Origin: Klebsormidium nitens
Taxonomy: Eukaryota; Plantae; Klebsormidiophyceae
Length of the DNA stretch: 34,818 bases
NCBI GenBank assembly: GCA_000708835.1
Contig: DF237716.1
Coordinates: forward strand, 1-34,818
Reading direction: 5' to 3'
Shown: positions 10,160 through 27,650 of the stretch, piece by piece
How the letters are laid out: each line of letters begins with the position of its first letter
Numbering within the stretch: position 1 is the stretch's first letter
Translations under genes and position numbers: made by a program
Notes under the pieces: model-generated
What the model saw: the letters and a program-made list of their open reading frames with translations, nothing else
The model's database searches: none
What the model was told of the DNA's origin: nothing

Positions 10160-10672
10160 ATGCCAGCATTAGCGACCCCTCGCCTGACCAGCGGGGGGGT
10201 GCTCAACCACTCTTCTCAGGCCCCCGTTGCTGACAAGTTTCCCAGTCGGCAGCTTTCACCAGAGGCTTTCAAAGTCAGTAGCTTCTCGTTTTCTGGCTCC
10301 ACTTTTGGCAGCCCCATATTTACAGGAAGATCAGGAACAGAAGAGCTGTTTAAGGTCAGCGGGAGGAACCGCGTGGTTCAGCAGAACTGCGCACGATGTG
10401 AAGTGGCAGCCAGAGAGTCGTTCCGCAGAGGCGATGATGTCAGCAGGCCTGGTGGGGGGTGGGGCACGACGCCAGCAAGAGCGGCCGGGCCCATTCGCAA
10501 ACGGGGGGCCAGCGTGCGATGCCGAGTTGCTGCTAGGGAAGCCCCCCCGGGGGCGGACAAACTGGCGCTTCCTGTAATTGAGGAGGAGGTCCCGGCAACG
10601 TGTGAAAAGGCCCCGGAGCTGCCGAAGTACGCGGCCCCTGAGTTCCCTAGGAGACTGCCGTCGCAATTGCAG
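10160..10672 (+). CDS. OMR1: Threonine deaminase exon 1 (Ser/Arg/Ala-rich transit-peptide-like N-terminus, 171 codons)
   Basis: ATG at 10160, open frame to CAG|GTGCGC at 10672/10673; phase 0 fits exon 2. No recognisable catalytic homology, so the start is inferred. Confidence 0.7.
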
Positions 10673-13600
10673 GTGCGCACATGTTTATTCTCCCTCTCGA
10701 AAACCTGGGTTGCACACTGTTGAGTTCCCCCTCTTGAAGATGTAGAGAGAGCTGGTCCTAACCACTGTGCGTTGAGGCGGACTGTATGTGCAGAGATCTG
10801 CTATCCTGCCCCAGAATTCACTAGACTGCTTTCTTTGCGCTGGTGCGCTTGTTTTCATTTGAGAATTGATACTTCTTCTCTTATGCTTTGGTCGTGGGGC
10901 TGTAGCCGGCTGTGAGCGTTGACTGGGAAAGTTTGTGGGTGTCCAACTTAGCACAGTGGTTGGACCCTGGCAAAGTTCAGAATGTACACATGCAACTCTA
11001 TGTATCCACTCACTTGTGAAGGGAGTCGGTTCCGAGATGACGGTGCCGTTGGGGATCGTGACAATTTGTTACATGTCTGTTACATACTTGTTACACTATG
11101 CACATATTTCTTTACACGAGACCTTGCCTGATCGATTGTTGCGGTGCCTTCCGTCGAGCGAGGCAGTTCTAGTTTGTTCTTTAAGTGTGGACTTAAATAG
11201 GAGGAGGGCATGCTGGTAGAAAGCAGCAAACTTATGCAGAAAAGGAAACGCTTCTTCTTCGGGAGCCGGTCTGCTGTTTAAACTAAAGCAATGGAAACAC
11301 CGTGATCATCGTGTTCCATTGAATCATCGTGTTTCCATTGTGATATGGGTACATCAGTGACTCTGCCTTTTTGCCCCTGGTACGAGGAAAGCTTCCTGCA
11401 GAGATAAGCGCTTTCACAAGAGGGTCGGTTGACCAGACTTGGAAAGACCAATCCCTTCAATCGAAATCGTTCATCTTGTCTTTGGTTTGATCGTTCATTT
11501 CGTGCCACTTTCAAGTGCTCCTGGTTGCTCGCTCCTCCTTTGCAGTGTGAAGCGGGCATGCTGGGGGGGTCAGCGAGTTCTGACTATCTTATCATCGTTC
11601 TTACTTTCAAAACCTTATAGCCAGTCGTTTTGGTTATTTGATACTACGAGGACATGCTGGGAGGAGTCAGCGCGTTTTGACCATTCACTTTTGTTGACAC
11701 TTTCGATTTATTATTTTTGTGCGCTTTTCTTTACAGTACGAAGAAGGCATGTTGGGAGGAATCAGCGCATACACACGGGGTGTCGGCCGGCTAGACTTGG
11801 GGGCAGACACACTATCATACCTGAAGAAGATTCTGACGTCACGAGTGTATGACGTGGCAATCGAGTCTCCCCTGGAGCGCGCAAACAAGATCAGCGACCG
11901 GATGGGAGCGGACATCTTCCTCAAGCGGGAGGATCTGCAAAAGGTGCGCACGCCCCTCTAGCTGTCTCGTTTTTCTTTTCCTACTTGTCTGCAGCCTTTG
12001 TTTGCCCGGCTTTCTTTCACGATGCTTTTCTGACCTGTGGCAACTGGATACTCTACTGCAGCAAAAGGGCCAACTGGAGAGGCAACCTGTATTCTGTTGG
12101 CTTGTTGTATTTTGAGTGTCGGTAGATGGAGAACAACTGGTTGCTTGCTCTTGATCCAGTGGTCTTTTTCTTCGTTGATAGACTGCCTTTACCGTGATCA
12201 AGCTAGACACTAGTGTGCTTGTCTGAGTGTCTCTCCCATCTCGTCGGGTGTTGCTGTCTCGTCAAAATAATCGTCATTGCTTCACTTCGGAACAGTTTGG
12301 GTTTGTCGAGTCTGGCCGTCAAACCAAGCCCCAGCTTCCCAATCGTGTTGCTTGAGAACGCTTTGACCCAGTGTGGTGTTTGGCAGTTGAGTCGTACCGT
12401 GCAGAGAACCAAACCCCTCTATTTGTCACTTTCACTGGCATCTGATTCCAGAATCTTACAAAGTTCGAAGTGAACCCTTCGAGGGGATCTCAAGTTGCTC
12501 GTTTGCAACATGATGGCCCAATCAAAACGGTCTTGGAAGGGTATCGTCTGCTCATCCCGCAAGTATAGCGATCCTTTCAAGCTTCTTTATGGTCATGCTG
12601 CCTTCCGTTTATTAACCCGCTTCTAACATACTTCTTGACCAGGTTTTCTCCTTCAAGCTACGTGGCGCCTACAAGATGATGGCGCAGCTGCCGCAAGACG
12701 CCCTTGAAGGAGGGGCATCTGCCTTGACTGCTAAATTTTCAGATTCTCTAAAGTCTACGTTTTTCTTACGATGGTTTCTTAACTCATTTCAAACCTACTT
12801 CTTGACCAGGTTTTCTCCTTCAAGTTGCGCGGCGCCTACAACATGATGGCGCAGCTGCCGCAAGATGCGCTCGATCGGGGAGTCATCTGCTCTTCTGCCG
12901 GGAACCACGCCCAGGGAGTCGCGCTTGCGGCGGCGCAGCTTGGTTGCAGTGCAATCATTTGCATGCCGGTTACGACACCTGCGATCAAGGTGGGTGGTTT
13001 TGAATCGAGCTTCTGGCTTTGGGGTTCATGGCTGAGGGTATCTAAGGATCATATTGCTTCTCGATCTTAGGTTCTATGGCGTTTGACTTGGGGGTTTTTG
13101 AGTTGCATTCGAGCTTGAAGTTCAGAGGTTAGAAAGACATCGCTCTGCCAGGTACAATGGCCAAAGGATGGTACTCACCGCAGCAGCTCAGATGCAGCGA
13201 AAGTTTTTGGATATCGCTAACCACACCCGCAACTAAGATACGCAATACTGGTGCCTCAGATTTCCAAGCTTTTAGATTAGTCTGTATAGACCGAGAGGTG
13301 GCTTTGACCAAGCAGAGGGTGCTGTGCTAGGAGTAATAACATCAGATTGAGAAACGTTTCTGCATTGAGAAAGCGAAGCTCAAGTCCTTTCGGAATCATT
13401 TTAGGAACTTTTTGGCAGAGGTTCCGGCGAGCTGCGCTCGCTTCTGGATACGTGACGCGACCACTCTTGATTAATTGTCTTTCATAATCGAGTCGCGCAA
13501 GTTCTGGACAGCGAATAAGTAGGGGACCTTATCTAGCAATAGGAGGACTCGGTATTGCGCGTTCCGCAAGCACGTAGCTCTTCTTCGCTCATCCTACAAG

Positions 13601-16600
13601 ACGCAGGCATGTGCTAAGCAGACGACGCTTGACGGGCCGAGAGGAGGGGTCACACGCAAGCCTGGTTTTGCGCTTTGAAGAAAACAGTTTCTGAGAATCA
13701 CTTGTGTCATTGCAATGGAACTCTGCGGAAGCGTCTCGGAGCAACCGTGGTTCTGGTGGGCGAAGCGTACGACGAGACGCAGGCACATGCCAAGCAGAGG
13801 GCTCTCGAGGAGGGCTCTCAAATGAGGTCAAACGCAAGCTCGTTGTTCGAGATTTTCAGCAACGCTTCGCTCACGGTTACTTCCTTTCTCTGCAGTGGAA
13901 CTCCGTGAAGCGGCTCGAAGCAACCGTGGTCCTAGTGGGTCTAATTTCCCTGACACACCGCCGAAATTTTTTAAGTCAATACAATCCAGCCTTAAAAGAG
14001 ACCGCAATAACTCGGCGTAAGTACATTCGAACTTACTGCAGTCCACGTTCGTTTTTTGCAGTGGAACTCTGTGAAGCGTCTCGGAGCGACGGTGGTCCTG
14101 GTTGGTGAGGCGTACGATGAGACGCAGGCATTTGCCAAGCAGAGGGCGCTCGAGGAGGGCCGCGTCTTCGTGCCGCCGTTCGACCACCCTGACGTCATTG
14201 CGGGACAGGTGAGGGGCCTGCTGACGTCAGTGTAGCTCCTTGGTTGGCTGCGTGCGCCGTTTTTGAGAGCGCGTTCAACTGGCAGCGCCAAATCTTGGGA
14301 ATCTTCCACCAAACAAATGCCGTTGGAGCAGCTGTCGAACACCGTTGATGACATCATTCCGGGATTCCAAATTCGCGCTAGTTTTGCTGATGTAGCAGCA
14401 CTGCCAATTATAAGTCCTCACCCGCTATTTTCCTGCTAGGTTCGTCATACACTACTCTTGTTTCGTAGACTTCGTAAGTTTTTTGTTTTGACAGCGACCC
14501 CAGTTCAAAGCGCACCCGAGAGCTAGGGCGTTGGAGGTCACACTCTCCCTATGACACTTCTCGTGCTTGAGTCCGAACTCCGAAATGCGAAACGACTTCG
14601 TTGCGGGGGGGGTGGACTTTCCGACAACCCGAGGATGAAGCAGATTGTCTTTCGTTATCTCTTTCTGCACACCAGATCTCTGTTTTCTTGGCAGGGCATT
14701 GCCGGCATGGAGATTCTATGTCAGCATCCAGGGCCTTTTCACGCCATTTGTGTTTGGTCGGGGGAGGGGGTCTAGTCGCCGGCATCGCAGCATATATGCA
14801 CTGCCTGCTTCCGGACTTTTGGGTCATGGCACCGTCGGCATGGATATCTTTGCGGCAGCATTCACTCCGTATTTGTTCCAATCGGGGGAGGGTGCTTATC
14901 TGAAATGCCACTTTCTGAATTGCTCGGTCATCTATAGAGCACGGTCGGCATAGAGATCCTTCGTCAGCACCGGGGGCCTATTCACGCCGTCTTCGTTCCA
15001 GTCGGGGGAGGGGACCTGATAGCCATCATCGCGGCGTATGTGTACTGCCTCCTTCGCCGAAACTCTGGAAGCTGTAAAAAGTTCAATCTTTTTTTTTTTT
15101 GCAGGGCACCGTCGGCATGGAGACTCTTCGTGAGCACCCAGGGCCTATTCGCGCCGTCTCTTTTTCAATCGGTGGAGGGGGCCTAATAACCGGCATCCCG
15201 GCTTATGTGAAATGTCTCCTTCGCCCAAACTTGAAATTTCGAAGCTGTTAACAGCTTAACCTCTTCTTACAGGGCACTGTTGGCATGGCAATCCTGCGCC
15301 AGCACCCGGGACCTATTCACGCCGTCTTCGTTCCAGTCGGGGGAGGGGGCCTGATAGTTGGCATCGCGGCGTATGTGTACTGCCTCCTTCGACGAAATTC
15401 TGGGTCATGAAGCTGTAAAGAGTTCAATCTTTTTTTTGCAGGGCACTGCCGGCATGGAGACTCTTCGTGAGCACCCAGGGCCTATTCACGCCGTCTCCTT
15501 TGTAATTGGTGGAGGGGGCCTGATAACCGGCATCATGGCTTATGTAAATGCCTCCTTCGCCCAAACTTGAAATTCGAAGCTGTTAACAGCTTAATCTCTT
15601 CTTACAGGGCACTTTTGGCATGGAATCCTGCGCCAGCATCCGGGGCCTATTCACGCCGTCTTCTTTTCAGTTGGTAGGGGGGCTGATAGCTGGCATCGGT
15701 TCGGCTTAAAGATTCTGACCTACTTCAAAGGTCGTTGATTCGTCAAGAACTCATTTACCATTCCTTTTCAGGGGACTGTCGGCATGGAAATTTTACGCCA
15801 GCACCCAGGGCCTATTCACGCCGTCTTCGTTCCAGTCGGGGGAGGGGGCCTGATAGCCGGCATCGCGGCTTATGTGAAATGCCTCCGGCCAGAGGTCAAA
15901 ATAATCGGAGTGGAACCAGCGGATGCAAACGCGATGGCGCTGTCGCTGCACGAGGGGCAACGCATCTGCTTGGACAAGGTAAGTTCTGCGGCTTCCATGA
16001 GGCACTTTGTATATCAGTCCTTGCCTTTGTCCCGCCTTTCTCGTGGATTGTGTCGACTCGATTGAGGACGGGCTCTGGCTCGCAGAGGACAGCGCAGTAG
16101 CTTGGACAAGGTGAGTAGTATGGCCCCAAGAGGCCTTTCTGAATCACCGTCTGTCCCGCCGAAATTGTAATTTACTGTTAGTTTAATCTCGTCTGGGGGA
16201 TACCAACGCAGGACATCGGAGTTGCTTGGACAAGGTACTTTCTGCGGCTTCTTAACTGGCGTTTCTTTCTGACTACCTTACTCTGTCTTGCCGTTGGGTT
16301 GGCCTAATCACGGCTGCGCTAACACGTGTCCAAGCGCATCTGCTTGGACAAGGTAGTTTGCGTCGCTTCGAAAGAGGTCTTTCGTTCTGCCTCCTTGCAC
16401 TTCGTCTCGCCGTTGGGTTGATTCCGTTGAAGGCTGGGCTACTGGAGCGGATAGCGCATCTACTGGACAAGGTAATCGGCGTGTTTCGAAAGAGGCGTTC
16501 TGTTCTTAACCCTTCACTTTGCCCTTATAGTGGATAGCGACTTCCTCTGCTTTATTAACGCATTTCTTAATCGCAGTATCTGCCGGAGACTCAGCGCTAC

Positions 16601-19600
16601 AGACATGCTGCTCTCACCCGAAGCGCCGGCGAAGCATTGGACGTAGTTTCAAGAAAATATTTTTGGCATGTGCGCGGTTTTGCTGATGGCGTGGTCCCCA
16701 AATTGGTCGGCGACGAGATTTTACGCATCTGCCGGGAACTTATCGAAAAAGATGTGTTCTATTCAGAGTCTTTGGGGGAGTCAATGGTAAATCCCTCCTT
16801 ATTGATTTTCTTCTCAGGTGGGCGCTTTTTCCGACCGTTAAAAATGGTCGGCGACGAGACCTTCCGCATCTGCGGGAACTCTTCGACCGTGTCATTTTAC
16901 ATCGACTGCAATCAGGATGATAGAAAGACTCATGCGAACCTCTTTTTCGCAGGTCGGTTGTTCCGCAGACGGAGTCGCAGTCAAAATGGTAGGTAACAAG
17001 ACGGTCTGCATCTGCCGGGAACTCATTAACGGCGGCATTTTGATCTCCAGTGCAACTCAGCGATGATAAGAAGACTCATGCGAACCTCTTTTTCGCAGGT
17101 CGGCGGTTTCGCAGACGGAGTCGCAGTCAAAATGGTCGGCGATGAGACGTTCCGCATCTGCCGGGAGCTCATCCACAAACCGCTTTTTTTCTCGAAATCC
17201 CTGGGGTTTCCTTAATGATTTCTTATTATCTTTCTTTCTTCTCAGGTGGGCGCTTTTGCTGACAGAGTCGCAGTCAAAATGGTCGGCGACAAGACGTTCC
17301 GTCGCCGGGGACTCGTGAATCGTTTCTTTCAAGAAAGTCATGCAAAACCTCACGATAGTCTCCTCTTTGCAGGTGGGCGGTTCCGCAGATGGAGTTGCAG
17401 TCAAGATGGTCCGCTTTTGCCAAAAACTCGTTCGCAGACTTCTTTACCTTCTTAGAACGTTGATTTGAAAGCAGAGGTTTTTTATTTTTCTTTTTCAGGT
17501 GGGCGGATTCGCTGACGGCGTGGCCGTCAAGATGGTCGCCGACCAGGCGTTCCGCGTCTGCCGAGAACCCATCAGCAATTCCTTTTATGGTCTCTGGAGA
17601 TTCCTTACTTAGTTTCTTTCTTTTCAGGTGGGCGGTTTCGCTGACGGGGTTGCGGTCAAAATGGTCGGGGACGAGACATTCCGCATCTGCCGGGAGCTCA
17701 TCGACGGCGTCGTGCTCGTCTCCAAGGACGCAATTTGCGCCGCGATCAAAGACGTCTTCGAAGAAACGCGGTGCATTCTGGAGCCAGCTGGCGCGCTCGC
17801 ATTGGCTGGCGCGAAAGCCTATGTCAAGTACAACGATTCGCAAAAGGGGGGGTCCAGCAACGGGGCGGCGAGGGGGGGCGCGGGATCGATGGTGGTGATT
17901 ACGAGCGGGGCGAATATGAACTTTGACAGGCTAAGGTGAGCTTTCAAAATAGCCGTTTTTGGATTGCGGGATCTGTAGCCTACGAATCTCCGACAGTCTC
18001 TGCCTTTTCGGTGAGACGCCTCCTTAGTATGAGATGCTGGACCAGTCTCATCTGTGGTCGTCAGGTCTCGCAAGCCTGCATTTCAATTCACTACCAACGT
18101 GACTTCGATAGGGTCCGGCCCAAGTCCCGAGTCATCGGTCTTTCGCAGAATAACGGCCCGGCGAAGTAGCGAAGCAACGCCTTTTGTTCGTGCGCAAGTG
18201 TTGACCCAATCAGTGCTTCCGATCCTCATCAGCAGCTTTGAACTTCAAATTGCTGACGTGGCCCCGTTCTATAAACTTTGGTTGGCTCCATACGAGCCCC
18301 ACTTAATTAACGTGCGAACCTGAGCCGTCAGCTGCGGATATTATGAGGATGAGGAGCAGATAGGGGGTTCGTAGACGCCTCTCTTCAGCATGCCATAATC
18401 ATTCCAACTCCTGAACCAGTTTTCATACGTGTGGATATCTCCTACTCATAACCACAACAAACCTGGAGACAAGGCTCTGCGAAGCACGACTGAATATGGT
18501 AGGGAGAGGTTCGAGGTCAGTTAGTCAGCTTTGAGGGGCCGAGAGCCTGCTGAAACTTTCTCTTCTTTCAGAACAGTCGACATCAGTCAGGCGGTTGGCT
18601 TCAATTCATAACAAGGTTCAAGAAAGGGAGGCCCTTTCTGTCGTTTTCTCGCAGGGTTAAACTTGTCGTCGCGACGAGTATCCCCCAGCGCTCTGGAAAG
18701 GTTCTGGACATTTCTCCTCGATTCTGGCCAAAATCTTACTTCTCCACTTGGTTCTACTTTTATGACAACGAGAGGAGTATAATGCACTGTGATTGCTTCA
18801 TGCAGAGTGGTTGCAGAACTTGCCGAGCTCGGCGAACGGAGAGAAGCGACTCTTGCGACAAGCATCCCCGAGCGCCCCGAAAGTTTGAAGGAGCTTTCTC
18901 TTTGGATTCCTTGTCAACGGTTTACTTGTTCCAACCTCATTCCAGTTTCAAAACGACAAGAGGACTCAAACGCACTGTGGTTGGCCCATGCAGAGTCGTC
19001 GCAGAAGTGGCGGAGGTTGGCGAGAGGAGAGAAGCGGTGCTTGCGACGAGCATTCCTGAGCGCCGCGGAACGTTCAAGGAGCTTCTCTGTTTGATCCTGG
19101 TCAAAAACTCACTACTATGCACTTTGTTCTGGGCTTAAATCGACAAGGGGATTGAGTTGCACTGGTTGCCCCATGCAGAGTCGTCGCAGAACTTGCCGAG
19201 GTCGGCGAAAGGAGAGAAGCCGTTCTCGCGACGAGCATCCCGGAGCGCCCCGGAACGTTCAAGGAGTTTTGCCGGCTGGTGGGGCCAGATATCAACATCT
19301 CGGAGTTCAAGTATCGGCGGGCAGACGACGCGGCAGCGCACGTGTTCTACAGCGTAAACGTGGCAAACGACGAGGAGCTGGCGAATCTGCTCGCGAGGAT
19401 GGCGAATGCGGAGTTTCCGACGATCGATATGAGCAGCAACGACCTGGCGAAGACGCATCTGAGGCACTTGGTGAGGATCTACAGACGCTTTTTCCGACGT
19501 CGGTTTTTCTTTCCGCTTAGTCGGGATCCAAAACTGGCGATACTTTTCTTGATGAGAACGTGGCGTGGAGTGACATGCTGGAGAAACTGCTGGCGAGAAC

Positions 19601-21281
19601 GGCGAAAGCGGAGTTTCCGACGATCGACATGAGCAGCAACGACTTGGCGAAGACGCATCTGAGACACTTTGTAAGTATTTTGAGACTTTTTCCTTGGAGC
19701 TCAGGTTTTTCTTCCATGACATTTGAACATTTGAGAATCTGAACTGCGGTCACTGAACCTGATTAGGACTGGCAACCGATGAGGAGCTGCCGAATCTCAT
19801 GGCTCTTATGGCGAAAGCGGAGCTAACGACCGAGATGTCTAGTAACGACTCGACAAAGACGCATCTGATTTATTTATCCGAGAACTTTTGTTGAACCCTC
19901 CAAGTCTTCCATCCAAGCGTTCGTTCATCCGAGATCCTGAACCAATGAGCGAGCGATGCGATGCCTATTTTCATCTTATGAGCTGCTCGGGAGAACACTT
20001 TGGAGCTCCCTTTAGCAAGTCATTTCTAAGTGCCTGTGGGCTCACTGTCCGCAGCTGAAAGGGAGTCTTGTAAGATTCCATCCTACCAGCACTCAGCTAC
20101 TAACTTTGAGTTCTCCGTCCGCAGTAACCTTCGATTTGGCGCCTGTCAGCACTCAGCCCTGATTTGTGAACTCCTTTTGTTCTAGGTGGGCGGGAGGAAC
20201 AGCGTAGAAGACGAGGTTTTGTACCGGTTCGAGTTTCCGGAGCGGCCCGGGGCGCTGCTCAAGTTCCTAGACTTCCTCAGCCCGCGGTGGGACATCACGC
20301 TTTTCCACTACCGAGCCGAGGTGGGTTATCTTGTCAACCCGTTTTCAGAAAGTCATTGTGCTGGGTTTGTTTCTGCTACTACCGCAAACATAGAATGTTC
20401 TTTTCAAGTTCCTAGACTTCCTCAGCCCACGTTGCTTGTAACGTTTTAGCTCGTTAACCCTGTCTGTTGCATACCTAACGCTTTCTTGCTGGTGAACGAG
20501 GAACTAGGAAAGGTTCTGTTCTTGAGATCTTGTACTTTTTTAGTCCGTGGTGAATCACGAGCTTCCACTCCCGAGCCGAGGATGGTTACCTCTAACCCGC
20601 GTGATCGCTTTTGCTTCTGTTTGAACCTTAAAAAGGGCGTCAGATTTCAAAGCGCACCAGTGGCATCTGAGTCCTGAGGGAAAATGTCATCGGACGGACT
20701 ACAATGCATCTTGAAATATTGGCTCAGCGACCAGTTTGCCCATTTCTGCGGGTTTTGGTCGCCGAGGCGTGACGGGTCCCAGGACGCCCTCTGTAAGTCG
20801 TACCGCCCTTGCCATCGCCCTTGTTCACCAGCGACGGAGCACAGGGGCGTCGTCTCATTTCCTTCTCGTGTCCGCTCTTGCAAGGCTCCGCCGCTTTTAT
20901 GTGTCGTTCTAGAAGCTTTGTCTTGAAGCCGCACGTTTGTCCACAAATCTTTTTTTTGCCTTCTGCTTTTTGACGAACGTGTGGGATGGATGCTTCGAGA
21001 AGCTTCCTCTCAGGATCCGTTGATCTGCTCTCGGCCCTTTTTTCCTTGCTTCGAGTCGAACGTATGGGGATGTATGTTGTAAAAGCTTGTTTGCGGATCT
21101 TCTTTTTGCTCACGAGCCTTTTCTTTCCTGTATGCTTCAGGGCGAACGTGTGGGAAACGTTCTGGTGGGGCTCCAGATTCCGCCAGCCGAAGAAGCACAG
21201 TTCCGGTCAGCGGCCGACGCTTTGGGTTACCAATACGTCTCGGAGGGCAACAACGAAGCGTTCCGGATGTTTTTACGCTAG
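10160..21281 (+). CDS. OMR1: Biosynthetic threonine deaminase/dehydratase (IlvA/OMR1 type), plastid-targeted, 9 exons, about 709 aa
   Basis: Exons 10160-10672, 11737-11943, 12810-12989, 14062-14208, 15772-15978, 17628-17935, 19179-19470, 20186-20320 and 21141-21281 join in frame with GT-AG introns. Motifs: [18 protein letters not shown] (PLP lysine), [56 protein letters not shown], and two ACT-like units ([22 protein letters not shown]). Confidence 0.95.
11195..11736 (+). repeat. Degenerate intronic echoes of the exon-2 acceptor/start
   Basis: Partial copies of TACGAAGAAGGCATGTTGGGAGGAATCAGCGC at about 11200, 11546 (after tgcag) and 11645. Confidence 0.6.
11737..11943 (+). CDS. OMR1: Threonine deaminase exon 2
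   Basis: ttacag|TAC ... [42 protein letters not shown]|gtgcgc. Confidence 0.93.
12475..12809 (+). repeat. Intronic echoes of the exon-3 acceptor/start (167-bp unit)
   Basis: tacttcttgaccag|GTTTTCTCCTTCAAG..ATGATGGCGCAGCTGCCGCAAGA at 12643 and 12810; a more decayed copy near 12490-12517. Confidence 0.9.
12810..12989 (+). CDS. OMR1: Threonine deaminase exon 3 (PLP-binding lysine)
   Basis: ccag|[13 protein letters not shown]...[14 protein letters not shown]...MPVTTPAIK|gtgggt. Confidence 0.95.
13590..14061 (+). repeat. Intronic echoes of the exon-4 acceptor/start
   Basis: Copies start at 13716 (acceptor mutated to CAA) and 13896 (intact tgcag); partial copy at about 13595; real exon at 14062. 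Confidence 0.9.
14062..14208 (+). CDS. OMR1: Threonine deaminase exon 4
   Basis: ttgcag|[26 protein letters not shown]...[14 protein letters not shown]|gtgagg. Confidence 0.95.
14680..15771 (+). repeat. Seven intronic echoes of the exon-5 acceptor/start, about 167-bp period, alternating A/B units
   Basis: Copies start at 14695, 14828, 14938, 15105, 15273, 15442 and 15608; real exon at 15772; the last five spacings are 167, 168, 169, 166 and 164. Confidence 0.95.
15772..15978 (+). CDS. OMR1: Threonine deaminase exon 5 (Gly-rich phosphate-binding loop)
   Basis: ttcag|[36 protein letters not shown]...VKIIGVEP...ICLDK|gtaagt. Confidence 0.95.
15979..16500 (+). repeat. Downstream echoes of the exon-5 end/donor (TGGACAAG|GT)
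   Basis: GT after TGGACAAG at 15979 (real), 16111, 16235, 16353 and 16472; spacings 132, 124, 118, 119. Confidence 0.9.
16660..17627 (+). repeat. Seven intronic echoes of the exon-6 acceptor/start
   Basis: Copies start at 16670 (AG lost), 16818, 16953, 17099, 17246, 17373 and 17499; real exon at 17628; spacings 126-148 bp. Confidence 0.95.
17628..17935 (+). CDS. OMR1: Threonine deaminase exon 6
   Basis: ttcag|[27 protein letters not shown]...[12 protein letters not shown]...[10 protein letters not shown](R)|gtgagc, ends in phase 2. Confidence 0.95.
18640..19178 (+). repeat. Intronic echoes of the exon-7 acceptor/start (185-188 bp unit)
   Basis: catgcag|AGT(C/G)GT.GCAGAA copies at 18806 and 18994, decayed copy near 18655; real exon at 19179. 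Confidence 0.92.
19179..19470 (+). CDS. OMR1: Threonine deaminase exon 7 (first ACT-like regulatory unit)
   Basis: tgcag|a [31 protein letters not shown]...EFKYR...[11 protein letters not shown]|gtgagg. Confidence 0.95.
19560..19875 (+). repeat. Downstream echoes of the exon-7 end/donor (about 200-bp unit)
   Basis: GCGGAGTTTCCGACGATCGA..AAGACGCATCTGAG.CACTT|GT repeated with a donor at 19671; decayed copy ending at about 19870. Confidence 0.9.
20186..20320 (+). CDS. OMR1: Threonine deaminase exon 8 (second ACT-like unit)
   Basis: tctag|[45 protein letters not shown]|gtgggt. Confidence 0.95.
20404..20600 (+). repeat. Downstream echoes of exon-8 internal and 3' sequence
   Basis: 20404-20428 is identical to 20259-20283 (TCAAGTTCCTAGACTTCCTCAGCCC); TTCCACT.CCGAGCCGAGG recurs near 20560-20582. 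Confidence 0.8.
20925..21140 (+). repeat. Short (about 85 bp) echoes of the exon-9 start
   Basis: CGAACGT(G/A)TGGG follows unit starts at 20972, 21055 and the real exon at 21141. Confidence 0.65.
21141..21281 (+). CDS. OMR1: Threonine deaminase exon 9 (terminal)
   Basis: ttcag|[14 protein letters not shown]...[19 protein letters not shown], typical IlvA C-terminus. Confidence 0.93.
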   Translation, partial: GERVGNVLVGLQIPPAEEAQFRSAADALGYQYVSEGNNEAFRMFLR

Positions 21282-23325: not shown

Positions 23326-23688
23326 GATGGGCCGGCGGCCGCTCAGTTGTCCTCAAACCCCTAAGGGAAGGTCATTTTGTAGTGAACCCCCTATGTTCAG
23401 TCCAGAGCCCCTCAAGACCCGAACGGCCAAGCCCCCCCCCCCCTCCGGCTGTATGAATATGTGTATTTTGCGGCTTTTTTGCCCCTGAGAACAGCATTTT
23501 CAGATCCCGATATTACAACAGATTCCGAGCCTGCGGCTCGACCATGGCCGAAACCCCGAGCCCCCCCCCCCCTCCCGCCGCCCTGAGGATTCCAAACCCC
23601 CAACCCCCACCCTCTGAACTGAACATAGGGGGTCAGCTTCAACATGACCTTACCCTAATGAAAAGGTGGGGCCTCCGCCGGCCGGATC
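23326..23688. mobile_element. Foldback / MITE-like element with imperfect inverted arms
   Basis: ACCCCCTATGTTCAGTCCAGAG (23386-23407) vs CTCTGAACTGAACATAGGGGGT (23612-23633) pair at 21/22; pairing continues outward (AAGGTCAT/ATGACCTT, GGCCGGCGG/CCGCCGGCC). No clear target-site duplication and no ORF. Confidence 0.55.
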
Positions 23689-26451: not shown

Positions 26452-27598
26452 GTAAGTCAGACATTTGCCCCTTGACTTGGTGAAGTTTTCCAAAATCTTG
26501 ATTGGTGTTTTGAGAGCTGAGGTTTTGTTACACTTCCTATGTCAACGTTTTGACTCGGCGGCTGGATCGGTATGTGTTTTGACAAGACCAATGACCTTAC
26601 CTGGAACCATTTACAGCTTTGGTTAGTTTTTTGGCCCCTTGTATGCTTATTCTCCTGTCAAAATTACTTTGCTGCAAAAGTCGACTTCTCTGAGGTCTCT
26701 CTGGCCAGCCGATACAGGCGTATGTTGAAGTTGCATCAAGCATATGATTGCCCTACTTGTAGAGCTTACTCGTGACAAATGTTCAACGGTTCAAACAACG
26801 CAGTCCCCTGAGTTGTCCTTTCAGCAAAGAGCACGTTCCAGATCCACCATTTTTGCCCTTTTTTTCTTCCTATTTTGCTGTTGTCATGAGTTGCTAAGGT
26901 GATGTCAGCGCAATGAACGATCTTGTGAACTAAAGAAGGGACTCTGAGCTGACTTGTCTTTTGATTGGAGAAATGTTTGAAATCTTAAGGATTATTCCTT
27001 TCACCCTCTCTTGGATCTATGCTTCAGACGGGATCCTCGGCTAAGATTGTTTCACCAGATAGCTACAACACGATTGTAATTTGGAGAGCCTAGATCAGAT
27101 ATTCCCGCCCTTCATCTTAACATTTCTTTCTTCTGATTACCGGTTGAGAACTCCGCTCTCCGTCATCCTTCATCCGCGCTCGATCTTGGGAAATCGAACA
27201 TGGAGACTCGCCCCTGATCTTAAGACTCGACAATTCCTGCTCCTCTTGGAGCAGGAAAGAGGATACGCACGGGGGCGCCAAGCTGATGCCTACACAGGTC
27301 TTGAAGGTACCCCTCCCGTGCTCTCTGCCTTGCACCCCCACAGATTTCCCTCTCTTTCTTACCCCTTCGCAAACCGGTCCTTCAGCCATCGATATTGAGA
27401 TATTTTTACTCTTCTCTCCCTTGCAGCCAAAGATGGGTCACGCGGGAGCCCCAAGCTGATGCACACACAGGTCTCGAAGGCATCCCTCCCTTGCTCTTTG
27501 CCTTGCACCCCCACGAATCTCTCCCTCCTTCTACCCCTTCGCAAATGGTCCTTTCATCCATCGACATTGAGAATCATTTACTCTTCTCCCCCTTGCAG
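26452..27598 (+). other. Probable 5' UTR intron of the NAL1-like gene
   Basis: Consensus donor CAG|GTAAGT at 26451/26452 and acceptor ccttgcag 6 nt before the ATG at 27605; pairing of the two sites is inferred. Confidence 0.4.
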
Positions 27599-27650
27599 CC
27601 AAAAATGGACTCACGCGGAGGCCCCAAGCTGATGCACACCCAGGCTCTTT
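27240..27650 (+). repeat. Three 172-bp tandem units covering the acceptor and ATG-containing exon start of the NAL1-like gene
   Basis: gcag| unit starts at 27255, 27427 and 27599, spacing exactly 172; shared CCAAGCTGATGC..AC.CAGG, and CCTTGCACCCCCAC in the two upstream units. Confidence 0.95.

Follow-up and report, generated by a model that had tools for sequence, protein, structure and literature searches.

Intronic arrays of partial splice-junction copies in a Klebsormidium threonine deaminase gene carry a two-fold synonymous excess

The DNA analyzed here, the 34,818-nucleotide (nt) contig DF237716.1 of the streptophyte alga Klebsormidium nitens (hereafter the window), contains a biosynthetic threonine deaminase gene, IlvA, whose introns hold tandem arrays of partial copies of the neighboring exon ends together with their splice sites. 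These copies, which we call echoes, are dead, unspliced and untranslated tandem partial duplicates of splice junctions. Their differences from the working exons are nevertheless enriched in synonymous changes, and the excess over what a neutral copy would show is real and about two-fold. Roughly half of the echoes’ synonymous bias is ordinary, because the exon changes only silently while the copy decays everywhere. For the remainder we propose, at somewhat less than an even chance, that an echo and the working exon end beside it come from different functional haplotypes within a highly diverse species complex that recombines, with neutral decay of the echo afterwards.

The size of the excess was judged against a simulated neutral copy. 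A protein search with exon 6 returned a 93%-identical fragment, and its contigs and their cluster relatives gave nine orthologous loci, L001 to L009. Three of these (L001, L002 and L003) come from one metagenome sample; L004–L006, L007, L008 and L009 are further loci. The pooled set comprises 84 echoes in 33 arrays of this one gene in five genomes (window, L001, L002, L007 and L008), and intervals were obtained by resampling whole arrays. In the simulation the copy is dead at birth and the exon accepts only silent changes; the actual codons were used, branch lengths were set by each copy’s own divergence at codon positions 1 and 2, and transition bias was taken from four-fold sites. Null values are given for relative third-position mutabilities of 1.0, 1.2 and 1.65, in that order; pN/pS is the ratio of non-synonymous to synonymous differences per site.

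Ratio of differences at position 3 to positions 1/2: null 1.58, 1.83 and 2.32; observed 2.59 (2.17–3.09)
Synonymous to non-synonymous codons: null 0.53, 0.60 and 0.72; observed 435:408, or 1.07 (0.84–1.32)
pN/pS: null 0.53, 0.48 and 0.40; observed 0.28 (0.23–0.33)
Stop codons: null 16, 17 and 18; observed 8

A first-pass annotation of this DNA had assumed that a neutral copy should show about two synonymous to three non-synonymous codons, which is sound, as the simulated 0.53–0.72 synonymous per non-synonymous codon indicates. The comparison with simulated neutral copies that it proposed for the whole genome was run on this gene in five genomes; at that scale the deviation from the null stands, and CpG effects are not its cause. 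The bias is uneven among arrays, some of which individually match the neutral expectation, and the position 3 to position 1/2 ratio varies by genome (window 2.95, L001 2.12, L002 3.03, L007 2.69 and L008 1.23).

IlvA occupies 10160..21281 on the + strand of the window in nine exons, and its spliced frame of 709 amino acids has no internal stop. Exon 6 matches solved threonine dehydratases (E=2e-24), and in a protein search with the same exon the closest named proteins are chloroplast enzymes of land plants (64–70% identity). RNA contigs from three runs contain the exact joins 14208>15772, 15978>17628 and 17935>19179, with loose ends running into exons 3 and 8. Exon lengths are the same in the window gene and in all orthologous loci compared. 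The exons, read from the spliced frame, are as follows.

10160-10672, 11737-11943, 12810-12989, + strand: exons 1–3
14062-14208, 15772-15978, 17628-17935, + strand: exons 4–6
19179-19470, 20186-20320, 21141-21281, + strand: exons 7–9

Echoes were detected by blastn of each exon against the exon-masked window. This yielded 27, all on the + strand and all within introns adjoining their exon. Each unit consists either of an intron end, the acceptor and the first 39–133 nt of the exon, or of an exon end, the donor and the start of the intron. The units stand head to tail with regular periods of 118–209 nt (repeat-family analysis), arrays flank most exons on both sides, and most echoes retain a pyrimidine tract and CAG acceptor.

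11642..11673, + strand: acceptor-side echo of exon 2 (blastn, 81% identity to the exon start)
12643..12722, + strand: acceptor-side echo of exon 3 (exon positions 1-81; 6 synonymous and 3 non-synonymous codons)
13599..13940, + strand: acceptor-side echoes of exon 4, at 13599-13632, 13716-13815 and 13896-13940 (blastn, codon counts)
14700..15708, + strand: acceptor-side array of exon 5, seven echoes (units of 165-169 nt, exon positions 1-115)
16087..16358, + strand: donor-side echoes of exon 5, three copies ending in GCTTGGACAAG followed by GT (repeat family D20; blastn match 16335-16352)
16670..17573, + strand: acceptor-side array of exon 6, seven echoes starting at 16670, 16841, 16960, 17099, 17246, 17373 and 17499 (blastn, unit alignments)
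18669..19084, + strand: acceptor-side echoes of exon 7, at 18669-18698, 18806-18897 and 18994-19084 (blastn, codon counts)
19577..19868, + strand: donor-side echoes of exon 7, at 19577-19669 and 19770-19868 (repeat family, blastn, codon counts)
20404..20580, + strand: donor-side echoes of exon 8, at 20404-20434 and 20554-20580 (blastn)

The homology extends into the introns: the flank of the 12643 echo matches the working flank with z=9.8 (14/54 mismatches), and those of the exon 7 acceptor-side echoes with z=11–16. Within the exon 5 array there is a two-unit higher-order repeat (15105/15442 and 15273/15608), and because the intron part of its unit is common to the window and L007, the array is older than the split between the two. 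A possible fourth donor-side echo of exon 5, spotted by eye only, lies near 16450. The exon 6 array mixes two nested unit types (approximately −55 to +75 and −13 to +133 relative to the acceptor); pooled over the array, 24 of 304 sites differ at positions 1 and 2, and 51 of 149 at position 3. The exon 6 echoes in intron 5 (16950-17630) also display AG/GT, the recursive-splice-site motif, because exon 6 itself starts with GTG. Such cag/GT starts are limited to the echoes of this exon and look incidental, and splicing intermediates are not visible in the contigs. Unit lengths over 12600-20600 cluster at about 120–210 nt (165-169, 141-147, 184-188 and 200-209), the range of nucleosome repeat lengths, which may be coincidence. 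A mobile element or introner was rejected as the source: every unit repeats the junction beside it and no other, and comparing the window with itself revealed no dispersed copies. An exon 5 breakpoint at position 115 that seemed to be shared by the window and L001 is partly an artefact of where BLAST alignments end, as the L001 echo reaches about position 155.

The arrays are present in the genome. Contigs from a DNA run, possibly of the same strain, cover them at 100% identity, and DNA depth over them is 17–20x, the single-copy depth of the exons, rising to 29–35x only where short stretches of repeat have collapsed. Exact DNA contigs and single-copy depth therefore rule out assembly artefact or contamination.

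Within the window, recounting gave the following synonymous/non-synonymous codons for the nine copies on which the earlier claim of a strong synonymous bias had been built: 17099, 8/1 in 26 codons (8/0 in the first 25, where the peptide is identical); 13896, 6/1; 13716, 8/2; 18994, 8/3; 12643, 6/3; 15273, 7/3; 19577, 5/4; 17499, 7/5; and 18806, 7/6. The hand counts were thus correct to within about one codon (62:28 computed, 61:22 claimed). Differences at codon positions 1/2/3 are 1/2/8 in the 13716 copy and 0/1/6 in the 13896 copy. All 27 copies together give 142:105 with pN/pS 0.24, and 73/45/174 differences by codon position in about 630 codons; the bias is weaker than in the quoted nine because those are the most favorable copies. 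The excess is therefore genuine but about half as strong as claimed, two-fold rather than four-fold, the nine being the best of 27. The description of the echoes as diverging almost like coding orthologs does not hold: between the window and L001 the real exons have a ratio of non-synonymous to synonymous substitution rates (dN/dS) of 0.019, with protein 94% identical and silent sites saturated, against pN/pS 0.28 in the echoes.

One way to explain a coding-like pattern is continued translation of the echoes in a minor isoform under protein selection, an option that the first-pass annotation had offered. The 17099 peptide, identical to the exon’s over 25 codons, would fit, as would the lack of internal stops in the aligned parts of the window echoes; that lack is not significant, since only 1.4–1.75 stops are expected among unique events, and echoes of the relatives do contain stop codons. 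The RNA contigs of the three runs show canonical junctions only and none at an echo, although contigs drop rare variants and minor use is possible. RNA depth in the introns is generally about 1–4% of exon depth. Echoes are absent from the splicing of the dominant mRNA. Moreover, the copies are truncated, without a donor site at their end, and then run into stop codons. In L002 all three exon 6 echoes have +1 insertions, and downstream of the shift their differences still track the exon’s frame. Amino-acid changes in echoes are not conservative, being as radical as random ones by mean BLOSUM score (P 0.2–0.4). We regard translation as largely refuted and give it almost no weight. Alternative or mutually exclusive exons were likewise rejected, as the copies are incomplete, some are frameshifted, and the RNA contigs lack such junctions.

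A more serious, if still unlikely, alternative is that the echoes were copied in place and dead at birth, with the bias produced by silent changes in the exon, higher third-position mutability, shared history and the choice of the best copies. The null by itself already delivers 0.53–0.72 synonymous per non-synonymous codon, and the nine copies first quoted were selected as described above. Several arrays fit it, with position 3 to position 1/2 ratios of 1.2–2.1 for exons 2–5 of L001 and 1.23 for L008 as a whole. Changes private to one echo have a ratio of about 1.55 and may be mutational, the amino-acid changes look random, and the shortage of stops is not significant. At the upper mutability limit of 1.65 the null ratio reaches 2.32, against 2.59 observed.

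Third-position hypermutation is, however, not what the sequences suggest. Pairs of echoes that are both dead change nearly evenly by codon position (30/24/32 in four decayed orthologous echoes of L001 and L002; 10/7/9 in sister echoes of the window), which argues against it and places third-position mutability at about 1.15, with rough limits of 0.8–1.65. Even at 1.65, array resampling excludes the pN/pS of the null (0.23–0.33 versus 0.36–0.44). Nor do per-base rates or CpG context offer a mutational cause: for each of the bases, polarized changes on the echo lineage accumulate at position 3 about twice as fast as at positions 1/2, CpG sites at position 3 change no faster than other sites, and intron CpG observed/expected is 0.94, which together rule out CpG decay or base composition. 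Non-synonymous transversions at two-fold sites are scarce relative to four-fold sites (statistic 0.67, 0.36–1.13, versus a null of about 1.2). Like the flank comparison below, this test gives a result that does not hinge on third-position mutability. Acceleration on the exon lineage alone was also rejected, because polarization with L001 and L007 puts most third-position changes on the echo side and the echoed parts of exons show no extra divergence between L001 and L002.

The intron flanks, which have no codons, provide a further comparison. For 23 units the homology of the 60-nt flank to the working one could be demonstrated; in these, echo and working junction differ per site by 0.282 in the flank, 0.295 at position 3 and 0.095 at positions 1/2. 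The corrected flank to position 1/2 ratio is 3.46 (2.57–4.75), where 2 is expected under neutrality, and position 3 to flank is 1.09. Since the flanks are as diverged as third positions, the anomaly is a deficit at positions 1 and 2 and not an excess at position 3, contrary to what in-place copies would require. The real junctions of L001 and L002 differ by 0.195 in the flank, 0.191 at position 3 and 0.012 at positions 1/2, and the echo pattern may accordingly be read as that of two functional junctions from different lineages. The calibration of position 3 against flank is loose (1.00 for L001 versus L002, 0.60 for window versus L007), and the flank test is supporting rather than decisive. 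Its ratio of 1.09 also indicates that copies are not homogenized by the neighboring exon. We therefore rejected repeated repair from that exon, since it would reduce divergence at position 3 and at positions 1/2 alike compared with the flank; by calculation, one-way conversion leaves a ratio of about 1.8, and on a coalescent argument two-way conversion pulls it toward 1. The echoes are not frozen in sequence either, because they differ from one another and old ones decay evenly.

What distinguishes the echoes is a silent divergence that does not scale with the rest. Third-position divergence in the window echoes is about 0.3 regardless of whether positions 1/2 have diverged by 0.02 or 0.18, a near constancy in the face of ten-fold variation that in-place copies would not be expected to produce. 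A constant-offset model beats a proportional excess by 5.1 log-likelihood units with equal parameters, treating echoes as independent, and holding the slope at its neutral value of 1.7 yields an offset of 0.15–0.21. The echoes of L001 and L002 lie 0.32–0.34 at third positions from both working exons, which are themselves 0.20 apart. Because silent sites and flanks are farther than the exon–exon distance, these echoes should be at least as old as the split of the two loci. At positions 1/2, however, the L002 echoes of exons 6 and 7 show no more than 4/156 changes. The exon 6 array of L002 is missing in L001 and L003, and the exon 7 echo of L002 occupies a non-orthologous place. Descent of the window echoes from an L001-like lineage was rejected, as their third-position distance is 0.29 to the window’s own exon and 0.49 to that of L001.

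An offset of this kind would be expected if the echo and its exon had separated before the echo came into being. We propose that two functional haplotypes drift apart at silent and intron sites by about 0.15–0.2 per site with the protein unchanged; that out-of-register recombination or gene conversion between such diverged haplotypes may then set an echo beside a working exon end; and that, once placed, the echo would decay neutrally. From a pN/pS of 0.28 set against about 0.5 we infer that both lineages were under protein constraint for some 45% of the echo/exon separation time. The earlier suggestion that the fragments were under protein-level selection for most of their divergence is thus borne out insofar as their history was more constrained than that of a copy dead at birth, but not as to “most”.

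The related loci show that haplotypes of the required divergence exist and have recombined; that such haplotypes were the source of the echoes is what we propose on this basis. The divergence between L001 and L002, about 0.19 at silent sites and 0.195 in junction flanks, matches the fitted offset in size. Across L001:4000-16000 the loci L001–L003 form a mosaic in which the nearest copy switches near 9–10 kb and again near 14 kb. By non-exon identity, L001 is nearer L002 at 4–8 kb (78–81%, versus 70–78% to L003), nearer L003 at 10–14 kb (84–92%, versus 72–80% to L002) and nearer L002 again at 14–15 kb (90%, versus 80% to L003). Close blocks are 8–16% apart and distant ones 20–28%. The switches mean that lineages this far apart have exchanged sequence.

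Exon 7 provides a single case. Between L001 and L002, 8/16 third positions differ in its first 16 codons but 12/82 in the remainder, defining two synonymous types of exon end, and this diverged patch coincides with the 49-nt repeated segment. The L001 echo nearest exon 7, whose exon part is that 49 nt, is of the type that works in L002 and L004, with 4/49 differences from it and 10/49 from its own exon. An apparent L002-like island at L001 11727-11875 is solid in its exon part; the 88% identity of its flank is probably A-rich low complexity and was not relied on. The matching offset, the mosaic loci and this echo lend partial support, and only that, to the other option in the first-pass annotation, that the fragments are abandoned former exon ends replaced by sequence from a diverged functional homolog.

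The same exon also speaks for a take-over within the array, in which diverged alleles play no part, echo and working end swap roles by unequal exchange, and the echoes are former working ends. That an end type working in L002 and L004 is an echo in L001, within a patch coinciding with the repeated segment, would fit, and array copy numbers do change fast between the window and L007. Only an unspoiled echo could take over, however; by our reasoning this adds constrained time worth at most about 0.015 substitutions per site for a 25-codon segment, versus the 0.15–0.2 needed. Copy-and-overwrite exchange would shorten silent-site coalescence rather than lengthen it, and between L001 and L002 the echoed parts of exons have diverged no further than the rest. 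We consider this account improbable.

Descent from different haplotypes, which we prefer, has its own difficulties. The data come from one gene, if in five genomes, and echoes within an array share history, making 33 arrays the effective sample; the mutability limit of 1.65 brings the null ratio to 2.3, near the observed lower limit of 2.17. The three L002 exon 6 echoes share a dead ancestor, because they have an insertion in common, and yet they differ mutually by 0.108 at positions 1/2, 0.24 at position 3 and 0.32 in the flank, a pattern that needs extra conversion events if the echoes were born from separate haplotypes. The intron part of the L001 exon 7 echo resembles L001’s own junction (~0.21) and not that of L002, so that the donor is unsampled. 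Position 3 divergence between L001 and L002 is no higher in echoed exon parts (0.181 versus 0.191), and exon-end swapping must therefore be infrequent. A second haplotype is not visible in the DNA run matched to the window. The diversity needed, about 0.2 per silent site, is extreme, and L001, L002 and L003 may be strains, species or homeologues. Finally, we know of no observation of sex in Klebsormidium.

It is also conceivable, though we rate it as rather unlikely, that selection keeps the echoes partly intact, either because a decayed echo is a recombination hazard or an intact one a repair template for an essential exon, or through a nucleotide-level role in splicing. The deficit at positions 1/2 relative to flank and position 3 would follow, certain echoes are much better preserved than their age at silent sites would permit, and the bias is present also between echoes of a common dead ancestor. 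The retention of pyrimidine tract and CAG acceptor in most copies, and the one apparent exchange between echo and working end, in exon 7 of the relatives, point the same way. A hazard, however, requires conversion to be much more frequent than mutation, which by calculation should homogenize silent sites, contrary to a position 3 to flank ratio of 1.09 and position 3 divergence near 0.3. The amino-acid changes that survive are not conservative, old echoes decay evenly across codon positions, and a splicing role gives no reason for a pattern in codon frame.

Each relative has echo arrays of its own, some of them at different exon ends, and copy numbers vary widely; the phenomenon is both old and dynamic. 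L007 is closest to the window, differing at 0.25 of third positions. Comparison of window 14700-19084 with L007:700-4500 gives 7 versus 1 copies for the exon 5 acceptor, 7 versus 1–2 for exon 6 and 3 versus 5–6 for exon 7, and intron lengths differ in line with these numbers (1563/1649/1243 nt in the window, 760/1339/1759 nt in L007). Intron 4 of all three metagenome loci (L001:7153-7284, L002:7487-7604 and L003:3462-3581) also contains the first ~130 nt of exon 5 in inverted orientation, on the opposite strand; this copy is common to them and old, and differs from the exon by codon position at 9/7/11 in L001 and 6/4/17 in L002. The L003 gene has two 1-nt deletions in exon 4 (L003:2516-2660) and a 1-nt insertion in exon 6 (L003:6242-6550), with the conserved VGEETF motif changed to VGKKTF; either this gene is a pseudogene or homeologue, or its contig contains indel errors. 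At L008:1965-2570 and L009:1964-2569 the called frame of 201 amino acids runs from exon 6 about 300 nt past the donor into intron 6, an example of exon-adjacent intron sequence inflating called genes. Elsewhere in the window, outside IlvA, there is a 46-nt inverted repeat (23362-23407 and 23612-23657, 83% identity, arms 250 nt apart), and the sole other strong direct repeat, at 27270-27644 in a different gene, has units of about 173 nt at 84% identity.

The finding that the bias is two-fold and not four-fold, in copies that are untranslated, removes the most spectacular reading of these arrays. Dead partial exon copies can nonetheless mimic coding conservation (pN/pS ~0.3, a 25-codon identical peptide) and thereby mislead gene finders and dN/dS screens applied to this genome. 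If the echoes were born from diverged haplotypes, each array would be a dated record of recombination between lineages. Streptophyte algae near the origin of land plants could then be tested for cryptic sex or introgression, and a mechanism for the growth of these introns would be at hand. It is possible, though we are doubtful, that the echoes are fossil alleles in a fuller sense, each trapped by out-of-register recombination between diverged haplotypes of a hyperdiverse Klebsormidium species complex. The arrays would then bear witness to sex or introgression in the past of an alga considered asexual, and the introns would be a readable archive of extinct functional variants and an occasional donor of a working exon end.

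Tandem repeats at exon–intron boundaries and intron change by tandem duplication have already been described; a full-text literature search found no description of such arrays in Klebsormidium. A dead copy compared with a live gene is expected to show dN/dS of about 0.5, and unprocessed pseudogene fragments resemble the echoes in being dead copies of which the old ones decay evenly over codon positions. Unlike them, the echoes have pN/pS 0.28 rather than 0.4–0.5, and their flanks and silent sites look older than positions 1/2. Mutually exclusive tandem exons share with the echoes tandem copies with acceptors and mostly silent divergence, but the echoes are truncated, without a second splice site, often frameshifted and missing from mRNA contigs. 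Intron gain or sliding by tandem genomic duplication reportedly starts from a duplicated segment with splice signals, which yields extra sites, the extra sequence being removed as intron. The echoes are likewise tandem duplications with splice signals whose extra sequence is removed as intron; they create no new intron, however, and instead repeatedly lengthen existing introns with copies of their own junctions.

Unequal crossing-over between homologues creates duplicates from different alleles, and ancestral polymorphism then inflates the divergence of paralogues. Such allele-born duplicates would share with the echoes a silent and non-coding offset present at the copy’s birth (fitted here at 0.15–0.21). 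Unlike the usual case, the echo offset is very large, the copies are sub-exon fragments, the process would have to recur at many introns, and the alga is not known to be sexual. A structural counterpart is the 37-bp minisatellite of human F7 intron 7, which spans an exon–intron boundary; the donor site of exon 7 lies within its first unit (PMC1557585). Both systems have head-to-tail units that repeat an exon edge and its splice site, with one site normally used. The echo units are longer (120–210 nt), flank most exons on both sides and, rather than being near-identical, are old and have diverged by about 30% at silent sites.

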